Assembly (NCBI RefSeq): GCF_964204865.1 | Contig: NC_135255.1 | Coordinates: 13,516,001-13,580,000, forward strand | Length of the DNA: 64,000 nt | Direction: 5' to 3' | DNA from: Styela clava | Taxonomy: Eukaryota | Shown: positions 1 to 48,882 of the stretch, one piece after another | Position numbering within the stretch: the first letter of the stretch is position 1 | Layout: every line of letters starts with the position of its first letter | Made by a program: the position numbers and the translations under genes | Notes under the pieces: generated by a model | Told to the model about the DNA's origin: nothing | Database searches by the model: none | The model's input: the letters and a program-made list of their open reading frames with translations, nothing else

Positions 1-568
1 GAGTAAGTTATAAGTTTTATTGAAGTGGACTTGCAAGTGGATTAGTTGATGCAATATATAGCGTATATACATATATTCGATTCATTATAACCTACCAGCT
101 GTGTTTTAATGTTAGCTTTAAACAGGTGTTGAATATGAGTAAGGGTATACTATATTGGATGTGTTTGAGCATTCAATTGCTCGTCAATCAAGTATATTGC
201 AATCAAAGAATTTGCATGCAAATTGAAAATGTCAATGCAGAAGAAACATACCCAATTCCACCACAACGAAGTTCACAGGGTGTTCCGGGCAAACGTGGAC
301 CACCTGGTGAAATTGGCCCGAAAGGATCACAGGGGCCCATAGGACCAAAAGGAATTGTTGATTATGAAAGAATTAATGCAGCAATAGAATCAGGTAATTT
401 AAATTAATATTGGTCGTAAGCATCAGTGGGGCTTGTACAAACTCTTGCAAAAATTACAGATTTCCATATATAAGAATATATTGAAGTTTACTTCTTATTG
501 TATATATATATAGTTTACATCTTTTTAAATGATGATATAATGACTGTCAGTATGGACTTGGTTTAGAC

Positions 569-1020
569 CAGGGATGGCGAACCACTGACCCGCGGGTCAC
601 AAAGTAACCCAACGCGTTTTATTCTTGACCCGCCAAGGCACTAATAAAATAAAAATGCTAACATATCACTGATGAGAGGTGATAAAACCGGTCTTTAATT
701 AATCTAACAATAACTAAACTATTATAATGTACCGTCAGTTGGTTATGACTGCGATAGCTCATATTTAAGTTGTTAATTTCCGGGCCGGTATGGTAATTTC
801 CTAAACCTCTAATCTTGGGCGCATGTATGCACCGTTCGTTATTCAACTATTGGCTCTGACATAACAATGCAATTGCTACTTTGCATTTTATTAGTTTCTC
901 GCCTACAATGCAGTTGAGAAATCAAAATATTCCAGACTTGAAATAAAAACCGAGAAATCTGAAACAACAATGGGGCAGTGTAAAAGTGCCTTAATGTGGT
1001 TGAAAGGTTCGCCATCCCTG
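569..1020. mobile_element. hAT MITE in collectin 1 intron 1
   Basis: 15-bp TIR cagggatggcgaacc; absent from the paralogous intron (17237 ggtatagacaaaa); TSD imperfect (gtttagac / atagac). Confidence 0.85.
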
Positions 1021-1879
1021 ATAGACAAAACTTAATAATGGGGTTTGTGCAGAACATCCAAGTATGTTATGTTGTGAACTTTATTCACTCATTCATTGGT
1101 AAAATTAAAACCATGTATCACTAATTTTGATGCTTTTATAAAATTTAGTTTGTTCGATTTGTATTATTACTTCAGCGACCCATACTTTTATATTTAATCC
1201 ATTGCAGCGATAAATGATCTGCGGACAGAAACGGAAGAGAAAATGAATAATGTCAACAAAACCATGAATGATCTTCAGCAGAGGATGGGTAATAAGCGAC
1301 TAAACTATCAATTATGTAAAACTGTTTTGTTAACATTACATGATGAATTTTTTGTCACAGAGTTCTCAAACATAAAATTAAATGCAAATTGGAAACACAA
1401 ATAGGATTTGAATCTATAATTCCCAACAAATAGAACTAAATGTAATTTTCATTTTCTAAATAAAATAGTCAACTGCGATGATTCAGAATCGAGAATTTCC
1501 AACATTAATATAAATTATTTTCAAACCGAAATACCTAAATTTTTCATTTTCTAAATATAATAGTCAACTGCGAAGTCTTTTACAAGAATAATTGTTATCG
1601 GATGGAACTTCACAAAACCCAAAATGAATTTTGATCAAGCAACACAAGCATGTAGAGATATTGGTATGAATATTGGATACATTCAAGATGAAACACATTA
1701 TCAAAAAATAGCAGAGTTAGTCAGATCAAAATCAACATTATCTAAAACAGGATACTGGACAGGACTATTGTACATAAACTCAGTGAGTATTTAAATATGA
1801 TTCATAACGAATATGGTGAACCACCAATTTTTTATCATTTCTATCACATTAAATTATCATTGACTTATCTCGGATTAGG

Positions 1880-47000: not shown

Positions 47001-47261
47001 TGTGGTTGAAAACAACACAGCATCTAAAAACGAAAGCATCATCCCAATATAAATACTTGCTACAGTACGTTGCTTAATGTAGTAGGTTAGAAAGCATAGA
47101 TGTATTTGCCTCTGTTTATAAATTACAGATTGTAAGATGTAAGTGGAATTGCAAGTGGATTAATCGAAGCCATATACGTATGCATTCAATTCACTATAAA
47201 CTAGCTGTATTGACTGCATTTGGGTTATAATGCTAATGTTAGCTTCAAACAGGCATTAAAT

Positions 47262-48882
47262 ATGAGTAAGAATATACTATATTGTATGTTTTTGAGCATT
47301 CAATTGCTCGTCAATCAAGTATATTGCAATCAAAGAATTTGCATGCAAATTGAAAATGTCAATGCAGAAGAAACGTACCCGATTCCACCACAACAAAGCT
47401 CACAGGGTGTTCCGGGCAAACGTGGACCTCCTGGTGAAATTGGCCCGAAAGGGCCACAGGGGCCAAGAGGCCCAAAAGGAATTGTTGATTATGAAAGAAT
47501 TAATGCAGCAATAGCATCAGGTAATTTAAATTAATATTTATTTGCTATTGGCCGTAAGCATCAGTGACGCTTGTACAAAGCCTTGTTTCGAGTGGAAAAT
47601 CTTGCAAAAATTACAGATTTCCCTTTTTACAGTTTACTTCTTATTGTAAATATATATATATGCTTTACATCTTTTTAATTGATGATATGAAGACTTTCCG
47701 TATAAATGGACTTGGTATATACAAACTTAATAATGGGGTTTTGGCAGAACATCTAAGTATGTTGTGTTGCAAACTTTATTCACTCATTCATTGAAAAATT
47801 TAAAAAAATAGTGTATCACTAATTTCAATGTTTTTAAAAAATTTAGTTTGTTTGATTTGTACTATTAGTTCAGCGACCCATTTATATATAACTTATTGCA
47901 GCAATAAATGATCTGCGGACAGAAACGGAAGAGAAGATGAATAAAACCATGAATGATCTTCAGCAGAGAATGGGTAATATTTACTAAACTATCAATTATG
48001 TAAAACTGTTTTGTTAACATTACATGATGAATTTTTTGTCAAAGAGTTTTGAAACATGAAATTAAAAGCCAACTAGAAACATAAAAATTGTTTGGCAAAC
48101 ATGATTTAGAATCTAGAATCCCCAATAAACAGAACTAAATATATTTTTCTTTTTCTAAATATAATAGTCAACTGCGAAGTCTTTTACAAGAATAATTGTT
48201 ATCGGATGGAACTTCGCAAAACCACAATGAATTTTGACCAAGCAACACAAGCATGTAGAGATATTGGTATGAATATTGGACACATTCAAGATGAAACACA
48301 TTACCAGAAAATAGCAGAGTTAGTCAGATCAAAATCAACATCATCTCTTACAGGATACTGGACAGGACTATTGTACAAAAACTCAGTGAGTATTTAAATT
48401 TGATTCATAATGAAGATGTTCAACTACAAATTCTTACGCTCGCCACAGCACCTCTGATTACCCTGCGTGGGTTCGCTGGTTTGGATCCTGTGTGGGTTAA
48501 TTATGTACAAGATGAATGCAGAACTTCTAGCTTTCATAAGGTGGTTCACATAACCTGTGGTCAGTTACAGCTTCCTTCACCGTCATGTCTATTCATCAGA
48601 GAACTGGCCAACTAACCCCATACCCAACATGATTATTAAGCCGCCTTGATAAATATGTAAATCCTATCCTATCTATTTCAGCAACTTGTGACACTTTCTG
48701 GAAATCCATCACCGTTCACTAAATGGTATCCAACTTTGCCACTTTCACCCGTTAGTGGCAATAATTACAGAAATGTGTACATTTATGTCAGGAAAGATAC
48801 AGGAAGTGTAAACCACGGCATGCATAACAACAATCCAACAGCCACACAACCTGGAGTGTTATGTCAAATCAAGTATACTTAA
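47262..48882 (+). CDS. Collectin copy 4, 249 aa; exons 47262-47520, 47902-47973, 48168-48385, 48682-48882
   Basis: Same structure; exon 4 has a 9-nt in-frame insertion in the long loop (WYPTLPLSPVSGNNYRNV). Confidence 0.92.

Follow-up and report, generated by a model that had tools for sequence, protein, structure and literature searches.

A tandem array of collectin-like genes in Styela clava with a conserved stalk and positively selected positions in a predicted C-type lectin-like head

The genome of the solitary ascidian Styela clava harbours a tandem gene array which probably represents a Styela-restricted paralogous family of secreted collectin-like proteins, carrying diversified heads on a conserved stalk and forming a humoral recognition repertoire. 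We analysed a 64-kb stretch of chromosome piece C6 (the window) and found four such genes, each with four exons bounded by AG/GT splice sites and with a product of about 246 aa (Table 1). A preliminary description of this DNA had reported a collectin array with an invariant stalk and variable lectin loops. The four genes are indeed real, but it had gone unmentioned that copy 1 is frameshifted, and the array extends well beyond the window. In all, at least 30 same-strand loci were found within 338 kb (C6:13267024-13605074), including the four of the window; the array was reconstructed from 48 loci and the window, leaving inter-locus stretches west of C6:13460001 uncovered, and the count is thus a lower bound. 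Complete open frames were present in 18 of the 30 loci found, two were open but began atypically, g16 with GTG and g30 with a divergent 5' end, and the others were frameshifted (four) or partial (six). Haplotypes put in the wrong place could account for some of the near-identical 'copies' that differ by about 1%. The exon joins were independently backed by the model of g18, a sister copy outside the window, which is identical to NCBI protein P0001 (LOC144424528). The genes of the array are labelled "uncharacterized" by NCBI, and no mention of their identifiers was found in the literature.

Copy 1 carries a premature stop because of an extra base in the C/A run of exon 3, so that the copy is a genuine pseudogene unless the assembly has erred in this homopolymer; its exon 2 additionally has an in-frame 9-nt insertion. 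In the rest of the window, four ORFs of at least 130 aa gave no Pfam match, and the repeated intergenic blocks contained neither long ORFs nor terminal inverted repeats.

Table 1. Positions, within the window, of the collectin-like genes and of their principal features
Feature	Position	Strand	Details
Copy 1 (array locus g25)	135..2396	+	exons 135-393, 1208-1288, 1564-1782, 2205-2396
Extra base in copy 1 exon 3, +1 frameshift	1618..1624	+	CCC+AAAA run, one base longer than in sister copies
Copy 2 (g26), open frame 246 aa	16788..18432	+	exons 16788-17046, 17428-17499, 17594-17811, 18241-18432
Copy 3 (g27), open frame 246 aa	20405..22029	+	exons 20405-20663, 21045-21116, 21211-21428, 21838-22029
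Copy 4 (g28), open frame 249 aa	47262..48882	+	exons 47262-47520, 47902-47973, 48168-48385, 48682-48882
Copy 2 collagen-like stretch, residues G49-V75	16932..17012	+	9 Gly-X-Y triplets including P51-G-K-R-G-P56; from sequence
Equivalent collagen-like stretches	279-359 (copy 1), 20549-20629 (copy 3), 47406-47486 (copy 4)	+
Copy 2 exon 4 diversified segment, residues 201-245	18292..18426	+	15 codons with posterior >0.9 for omega>1
Equivalent diversified segments	2256-2390 (copy 1), 21889-22023 (copy 3), 48733-48876 (copy 4)	+
Hypervariable exon 3 codon, copy 2 residue 171, directly before the WTGL strand	17774..17776	+	site models

Whole-protein searches and the fold model were carried out with the sister-copy protein P0001, while the exons of the window were searched singly and their spliced joins were used only for translation and dN/dS. 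The sequence supports a collectin-like order of parts in the product: a signal peptide, a short N-terminal piece containing one or two cysteines, nine uninterrupted collagen triplets, a neck that is an amphipathic helix of about 35 residues, and a C-type lectin-like domain (CTLD). Domain order, Foldseek and hhalign agreed on this architecture, as had been proposed from the sequence earlier. The AF2 model of P0001 showed pLDDT of 85-96 over residues 112-246, where the elements b1-a1-a2-b2-long loop-b3-b4-b5 follow the order expected for a CTLD, and a helix at residues 77-111 (pLDDT 56-65) that aligns to the neck of SP-D. Foldseek matched this model to at least 500 PDB CTLD chains at E<=1e-3; the best chains were the CL-K1 trimer 4yli, tetranectin 1htn, SP-A, SP-D and MBP, and the listed top matches all had a probability of 1.00. 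Thus, the head is predicted to be a confident CTLD, nearest to the neck-plus-head structures of collectins and tetranectin. A homotrimer prediction with three chains of P0001 residues 76-246 gave a score of 0.02, which bears neither way on trimerisation.

The hhalign comparison with an SP-D-like protein reached 96.8% probability over neck and head, and the A1 profile matched CTLDs of DEC-205, mannose receptor, snaclec and SP-A at E=6e-8 to 3e-3. SP-D-like proteins were the first named non-Styela matches (E=1e-7 to 2e-4, partly via the collagen), and the only relative that scored beyond S. clava was an unnamed 324-aa protein, P0046. Pfam Lectin_C gave 21.3 bits (E=4.8e-4) for P0001 against a cut-off of 22.6, and 13-15 bits for single exons; in the single-exon scans nothing usable was obtained for exon 4, and exon 3 matched only below threshold. 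Pfam Collagen scored 20.3-23.8 bits (20.3 for P0001) against a cut-off of 27.2, because the collagen stretch is short. Nine triplets are very few for a stable collagen helix.

The head is a non-canonical CTLD, since it has no inner disulfide. As described earlier, the outer and N-terminal cysteine pairs (C139-C241 and C113-C121) are kept, while none of the 20 copies has the inner-disulfide cysteines C2 and C3, nor do the relatives P0006, P0007, P0008 and P0046; in the profile alignment the positions of these two cysteines fall on a gap/V212 and on T233. The earlier reading that the canonical Ca2+/sugar ligands are replaced was also borne out, i.e. the E of EPN by K/T/R/A/S202, the N by N/R/V204 and the E193 equivalent by K/R210. 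The WND position reads M-x-N or, by a one-residue shift of register, x-N-(Y/H/N), so that the D of WND is replaced by N or by Y/H/N. Among the window copies, the translations contained RPN, TPN and TPR at the xPN position, and MTN, MYN, MDN and MHN at the WND position, as had been noted; copy 4 reads either LPL or SPV, its register being ambiguous because of a 3-codon insertion adjoining the xPN motif. Every copy has lost the canonical Ca2+ site-2 ligands together with the inner disulfide, and for this reason classical Ca2+-sugar binding is unlikely.

Strong positive selection acts on about 16 positions of the head, and purifying selection on the stalk and neck. Mean dN/dS rose from 0.23 (exon 1) and 0.30 (exon 2) to 0.57 (exon 3) and 2.0 (residues 202-243). 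Omega was 0.36 for exons 1-2 and, under M0, 1.87 for exon 4 (p=0.005 against omega=1), and lnL, omega and kappa were reproduced by IQ-TREE. M2a was favoured over M1a for exon 4 (2dlnL 46.9) and exon 3 (42.7) but not for exons 1-2 (1.75, n.s.), and M8 was similarly preferred over M7 for exon 4 (50.1) and exon 3 (42.6) but not for exons 1-2 (2.6, n.s.). With M8, about 35% of exon-4 sites fell in a class at omega ~5. Recombination is pervasive in the array, every segment rejecting the trees of the other segments, and the site-model tests can therefore be inflated. In a tree-free check on eight independent near-identical pairs, non-synonymous divergence in exon 4 was 7.57%, i.e. 2.4 times the synonymous (3.10%) and flank (3.06%) rates, with 90 non-synonymous against 10 synonymous changes (binomial p=0.002). 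The diversifying selection on CTLD loops suggested earlier was thus upheld by family-wide dN/dS, by the site models and by the pairs. Nothing specific on positive selection in ascidian C-type lectins was found in the literature.

The selected positions lie around the xPN- and WND-equivalent motifs and on every second residue of the strands b3 and b4; others fall in the loops b3-b4 and b4-b5, and a single one precedes b2. The diversified segment of exon 4 takes in the xPN loop, the face of b3, the b3-b4 loop, b4 and the b4-b5 loop. Residues 213/215/217 of b3 and 228/230 of b4 vary, while the interleaved residues 212/214/216 and 227/229 are invariant, as is typical where a sheet exposes one of its faces. 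Residue 171, encoded by exon 3, is occupied by nine different residues among 20 copies, and its omega is at the upper bound (>=21).

The preliminary description had drawn its evidence for selection from copies 2 and 3 alone. Our recount gave the same differences, namely 3 of 86 aa in exon 1 against 14 aa, plus 3 codons with synonymous changes only, in exon 4, and all 14 lie within 34 codons (exon-4 codons 18-51). However, the contrast between the two exons in a single pair is not enough to demonstrate selection. Non-coding divergence between the two copies was K=0.027 in intron 1, K=0 in intron 2, K=0.21 in intron 3 and K=0.18 downstream. Copies 2 and 3 are mosaics of a young shared 5' half and an old 3' half, and the contrast is confounded and inflated by the recombination breakpoint. 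Across the array, head variants have been re-assorted among the copies by recombination or gene conversion. The earlier interpretation as a whole was partly supported.

The stalk had been called invariant. It is indeed conserved, with a mean pairwise identity of 93% as compared to 72% for residues 199-245, but it is not invariant. Exon-1 dS (0.155) equals the intron divergence (0.13-0.16), so the stalk has been conserved by selection and not by recent homogenisation; recent gene conversion as the cause was thereby ruled out. The sequence P-G-K-R-G-P was present in 19 of 20 copies, g14 having K-H. In the MASP-docking motif of MBL and ficolins, the residue after the Lys is generally aliphatic (PMC2856262). 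The stalk motif of the array has Arg at this position and otherwise fits the docking motif, making it a putative site for MASP docking.

We considered whether the loops could vary neutrally, in a recently amplified segment whose copies decay by birth and death under relaxed constraint. About one-third of the loci are frameshifted or partial, dN averages 0.15 in the variable segment, about the same as the divergence of introns, and a conservative tree-free tally of distinct codon states gave only a 1.5-fold non-synonymous excess (p=0.12), all of which would suit such decay. Nevertheless, omega of exon 4 significantly above 1, a strongly favoured class of omega ~5 alongside 40% of exon-4 codons that stay constrained, and the non-synonymous excess in young independent pairs are contrary to it, as are the 18-20 frames that remain open and a stalk omega of 0.2-0.35. 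We regard neutral decay as very improbable.

Selection on the head could also reflect gamete recognition, self-sterility or another form of conspecific recognition instead of defence, which we consider improbable. Ascidians are self-sterile hermaphrodites, and a positively selected recognition surface with tandem multiplicity is also typical of fertilisation proteins. On the other hand, a collagen-neck-CTLD protein with a MASP-type lysine motif has the architecture of humoral defence collagens, and expanded collectin/MBL-type and complement genes, among which the loci of the array may be included, have been reported for S. clava (PMC7540406). Colony allorecognition is not applicable to this solitary species, and allorecognition, which had been offered earlier as a possible role, is not favoured. 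Equally, the loops might vary without pathogen pressure in proteins serving metamorphosis, settlement-cue sensing or tunic/matrix organisation. Where a CTLD has no Ca2+ site its ligand is often something other than a sugar, in agreement with such a developmental or structural role. Wei et al. 2020 reported, at the level of gene counts, an expansion of collectin/MBL-type genes in S. clava and expression of most expanded complement genes at metamorphosis, and the expanded MBL/complement genes have been linked to tail regression and settlement (PMC7540406). Yet the genes of the array are not tied to that gene set, and sustained omega ~5 at about 15 surface positions is unexpected for a structural or developmental ligand, leaving this role with very little likelihood.

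We compared the humoral recognition repertoire that we favour with known systems. Vertebrate collectins (MBL, SP-A, SP-D and CL-K1/collectin-11) have the same order of parts, provide the best structural matches to the Styela head, and share with its stalk a Pro-Gly-Lys-X-Gly-Pro motif resembling the MASP site. In contrast to them, the Styela proteins have only nine triplets, are only 13-18% identical in sequence, lack the inner disulfide and the Ca2+ ligands E (EPN), E193 and D (WND), and belong to a tandem set of about 30 paralogs whose loops are under positive selection. The head of the Styela array is split across two exons; collectin CRDs are encoded by a single exon. Tetranectin (1htn), second in Foldseek with TM 0.72 on target, has a coiled-coil neck followed by a long-form CTLD which, according to the entry title, binds a protein ligand, plasminogen. 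It differs from the Styela family in being single-copy and without a collagen stalk, and keeps all three disulfides and the Ca2+ sites. A second S. clava collectin-like subfamily (P0006/P0017, one entry of which is named 'pulmonary surfactant-associated protein A-like') shows the same architecture, the missing inner disulfide, a common G-M-aromatic-N/D strand motif and a Pro-Gly-Lys-Lys-Gly-Pro stalk motif, but is located on another chromosome piece, has at least 14 collagen triplets and is only 26-30% identical to the array. NK-cell Ly49/KLR receptors, snake-venom snaclecs and invertebrate CTL expansions are tandem CTLD families that bind non-sugar ligands and in which positive selection centres on the loops. 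These are membrane receptors or venom heterodimers devoid of a collagen stalk, whereas Styela couples its diversified head to a collectin-type stalk. The collectin-like protein of Styela plicata, the Ciona MBL-like lectin and Halocynthia GBL are humoral collagenous or MASP-associated tunicate C-type lectins induced in inflammation (PMC5465252). Their likeness to the array is one of description, and no loop diversification in them was reported in the literature found.

By analogy with collectins and tetranectin, the neck and collagen would assemble three chains with the three heads pointing the same way, and through the conserved stalk all heads would share one contact downstream. Most likely, the array would provide about 20 germline humoral recognition proteins against ligands that change quickly, for instance the surfaces of microbes or parasites. 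A more elaborate possibility, which we advance tentatively and consider rather unlikely, is a recombination-shuffled germline set of 20-30 collectin-like molecules whose heads, lacking the Ca2+ site, bind proteins or other non-classical ligands and whose stalk docks a MASP-type protease. If that were true, many head specificities would feed one complement trigger, as a small set of 'innate antibodies' on a collectin scaffold.

Fast-evolving lectin gene families are well known, and judged from its sequences the array is a real recognition-gene family of a broadly familiar kind with a candidate function. What is joined here is a collectin-type stalk and a head without sugar/Ca2+ site, diversified at about 16 positions, in at least 20 paralogs. 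No living group is closer to the vertebrates than the tunicates, whose recognition is innate only, and in the usual picture the lectin pathway consists of a small number of sugar sensors with broad specificity. Were the genes expressed and the stalk to dock MASP, the lectin pathway of this ascidian would be fed by a diversified, probably non-sugar repertoire, which would also be a small natural panel in which to study how the specificity of CTLD loops arises.

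The window (Styela clava, C6:13516001-13580000) is AT-rich eukaryotic DNA with a GC content of ~0.33, and four direct repeats within it, each of ~1.7-2.3 kb, were resolved as four-exon gene copies (copies 1-4) with canonical AG/GT borders. The exon joins are independently supported, since the model of a sister locus, g18, was identical at all 246 residues to P0001, the NCBI protein of LOC144424528, whose numbering is used here. In the four frameshifted copies found across the array most lesions were located in homopolymer runs and, therefore, pseudogenes and assembly errors could not be separated for copy 1 or the others.

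Coordinates of the gene copies and associated features (window positions, or positions on chromosome piece C6 where so marked)
Feature	Position	Strand	Remarks
Copy 1	exons 135-393, 1208-1288, 1564-1782, 2205-2396	+	frameshifted
Extra base in copy 1	1618-1624		+1 base in C/A run; frame runs into stops
Insertion in copy 1 intron 1	557-1020		~460 bp, private to copy 1, not in copies 2-4; inverted ends CAGGGATGGCGAACC ... GGTTCGCCATCCCTG; MITE-type look
Short duplicate near copy 1	1441-1480		intron-2 acceptor and first 12 bases of exon 3, ~95 bp 5' of the true exon 3
Copy 2	exons 16788-17046, 17428-17499, 17594-17811, 18241-18432	+	open frame, 246 aa
Exon-1 duplicate near copy 3	20262-20348		87 bp, partial (92%), first 87 bases of exon 1 including start codon; 57 bp 5' of copy 3's start, in a different frame
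Copy 3	exons 20405-20663, 21045-21116, 21211-21428, 21838-22029	+	open frame, 246 aa
Intron-3 repeat	21533-21761		~230 bp, copy 3; same place in other copies
Copy 4	exons 47262-47520, 47902-47973, 48168-48385, 48682-48882	+	open frame, 249 aa
Intergenic block	10279-14289, 39168-44329, 56384-61719		~4-5 kb, non-coding
Whole array	C6:13267024-13605074	+	338 kb
Locus g06	C6:13321217		same upstream exon-1 duplicate arrangement as copy 3
Loci g20, g22, g24	C6:13493382, 13504061, 13513281		outside the window; partial, without exon 1; common in-frame 18-nt exon-3 deletion

A whole-assembly search, and then BLAST searches of the retrieved pieces with the four exons, placed these copies in an array of at least 30 loci, all on one strand; this is a lower bound, as internal stretches were partly covered. 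Complete open frames were present at 18 loci and an open frame with an altered start at two more, while four loci were frameshifted and six lacked exons. No copy was found in the flanking 20 kb to the west or 25 kb to the east. All members are named 'uncharacterized protein' by NCBI, and one fragment was called 'mannose-binding protein A-like' in an older annotation. When the genome was searched with a 1.9-kb probe from the intergenic block, which occurs three times in the window, ~16 full-length copies, plus fragments, were obtained, all of them in one orientation and confined to this array. The array was, therefore, expanded by duplication of units larger than the gene. Neither ORFs of at least 100 aa nor terminal inverted repeats were present in the block, which may serve as a regulatory or other non-coding component of the duplicated unit or may hide a gene with small exons. 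It also holds a ~240-bp palindromic element dispersed genome-wide. The intron-3 repeat, with many matches of 76-77% identity on other chromosome pieces, is likewise a dispersed element, and was in the gene already before the array expanded. Loci g20, g22 and g24 are a sub-lineage of gene fragments, itself duplicated. Across all copies, the 300 bp 5' of the start codons showed a mean K2P divergence of 0.38, as compared to 0.13-0.16 for introns and 0.13 for the 3' flank; either the promoters may differ between copies, or insertions may break the alignment.

In exon 1, a hydrophobic, signal-like N-terminus precedes a short segment containing C22 and C27, which leads into nine Gly-X-Y triplets (G49-V75). 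Exon 2 and the last part of exon 1 provide a helix at residues 77-111 in the AlphaFold2 model of P0001, and exons 3 and 4 encode the C-type lectin-like domain (CTLD), or head. Pfam scores of P0001 were slightly below threshold for both Collagen (20.3 bits) and Lectin_C (21.3 bits). However, the model had a pLDDT of 85-96 at residues 112-246, with its elements in CTLD order, and the top Foldseek matches were the neck and CRD chains of CL-K1 (collectin-11) trimer, tetranectin, SP-A, SP-D and MBP, with a probability of 1.00. The alignment of the family profile with an SP-D-like protein (hhalign, 96.8% probability) extends across both neck and head. The stalk motif V-P-G-K-(R/H)-G-P-P was present in 20/20 open-frame copies; except for Arg at Xaa, which is generally aliphatic, it matches exactly the P-G-K-Xaa-G-P motif for MASP docking of MBL and ficolins (PMC2856262), and a distant S. 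clava subfamily has P-G-K-K-G-P. This sequence resemblance may be taken as a lead, not a test.

The head retains the cysteine pairs C113-C121 and C139-C241 but neither cysteine of the inner disulfide, as the preliminary description had stated; in the SP-D-like alignment the latter fall on a gap/V212 and on T233. In the same alignment, K202-P-N204 lies on E-P-N and K210 on the Glu before strand b3. The tripeptides noted earlier at the EPN/QPD-equivalent (xPN) position, RPN, TPN and TPR, were recovered, that of copy 4 being LPL or SPV as the register is ambiguous beside a 3-aa insertion; MTN, MYN, MDN and MHN were reproduced at the WND position. For the WND strand two readings are possible, shifted by one residue: M227-x228-N229, as proposed earlier, or x228-N229-x230, according to hhalign; its acidic ligand is gone in both. 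Every copy lacked at least three of the five canonical site-2 ligands, and, judged from these residues, classical Ca2+-dependent sugar binding would not be expected. Four more distantly related S. clava proteins and a 324-aa protein from a public read assembly likewise have no inner disulfide and show a strand of the form G-(M/I/L)-aromatic-(N/D). Since distant proteins carry the same features, the odd head is older than the array.

The proposal that the heads are diversifying had drawn on a comparison of copies 2 and 3, whose counts were reproduced: 3/86 aa differ in exon 1 but 14 aa in exon 4, all within 34 codons, against three synonymous-only codons. Divergence between these copies, however, was K=0.027 in intron 1 and K=0 in intron 2, as compared to K=0.21 in intron 3 and K=0.18 in the 3' flank. 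Copies 2 and 3 are mosaics, and the pairwise contrast is therefore insufficient. Recombination is general in the array: in AU tests of four segments (exon 1 to exon 2, exon-3 region, exon-4 flanks and exon 4 itself), each segment rejected the trees of the other three (all p<=1e-4). Hence, three separate approaches to selection were applied to the 20 open-frame copies.

Mean pairwise dN/dS (Nei-Gojobori) was 0.23 for exon 1, 0.30 for exon 2, 0.57 for exon 3 and 2.0 for residues 202-243, where dN exceeded dS in 147/171 pairs. Homogenisation could also keep a stalk uniform, but the exon-1 dS of 0.155 is close to intron divergence (0.13-0.16), and the stalk is thus kept by purifying selection. Codon likelihoods were computed by in-house GY94+F3x4 code with an own tree for each partition. 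The M0 omega was 1.87 for exon 4 (p=0.005 vs omega=1), 0.50 for exon 3 and 0.36 for exons 1-2; IQ-TREE gave the same lnL in 3/3 partitions, with omega 1.872 and kappa 2.244 for exon 4. Comparison of M2a with M1a gave a 2dlnL of 46.9 for exon 4 (35% of codons at omega 5.0), 42.7 for exon 3, arising from one codon, residue 171 (nine residue types in 20 copies), and 1.75 for exons 1-2. The M8 vs M7 comparison suggested earlier gave 50.1, 42.6 and 2.6, respectively, with a class of omega>1 in exon 4. The exon-4 signal persisted on the tree of the non-coding flanks (2dlnL 71.6). For a tree-free test, eight phylogenetically independent pairs were picked for near-identical non-coding exon-4 flanks. 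Differing sites amounted to 3.06% in the flanks, 3.10% at exon-4 synonymous and 7.57% at exon-4 non-synonymous sites; the exon-4 changes, 90 non-synonymous vs 10 synonymous, show a non-synonymous excess (binomial p=0.002), which was also seen relative to the flanks (Poisson p=5e-14). Counting distinct codon states, a purposely conservative measure, gave just a 1.5-fold excess (p=0.12). Diversifying selection on the head, with the stalk as internal negative control, is well supported by these approaches taken together.

Sites with a posterior >0.9 were V171 in exon 3; S201, K202, N204 and D206 in or around the xPN loop; Q217 at the b3 end; S222, Y224 and H225 in the b3-b4 loop; D228 and Y230 in b4; I231, A234 and T235 in the b4-b5 loop; and P237 and Y245. 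Variable residues alternate with invariant ones, 213/215/217 with 212/214/216 in b3 and 228/230 with 227/229 in b4, which in the model looks like the pattern of one exposed sheet face. Mean pairwise identity was 72% for residues 199-245 and 93% for residues 1-110, and 19/20 exon-4 peptides were distinct.

Expanded families of S. clava are reported to include 'pulmonary surfactant-associated protein collectin'; the same study counts 25 MBL genes and describes an expression peak at metamorphosis for most of the expanded complement genes (Wei et al. 2020, PMC7540406), among which the array genes may be represented. Collectin-like proteins of Styela plicata increase in inflammation (review PMC5465252). 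Our literature search found no report of loop diversification or a non-canonical site. The earlier observation is confirmed and its interpretation supported in part: the data show that the head is under diversifying selection, that the stalk is conserved and that the Ca2+ site has been destroyed. The family is collectin-like in architecture, but not a canonical collectin by the defining sugar-site feature.
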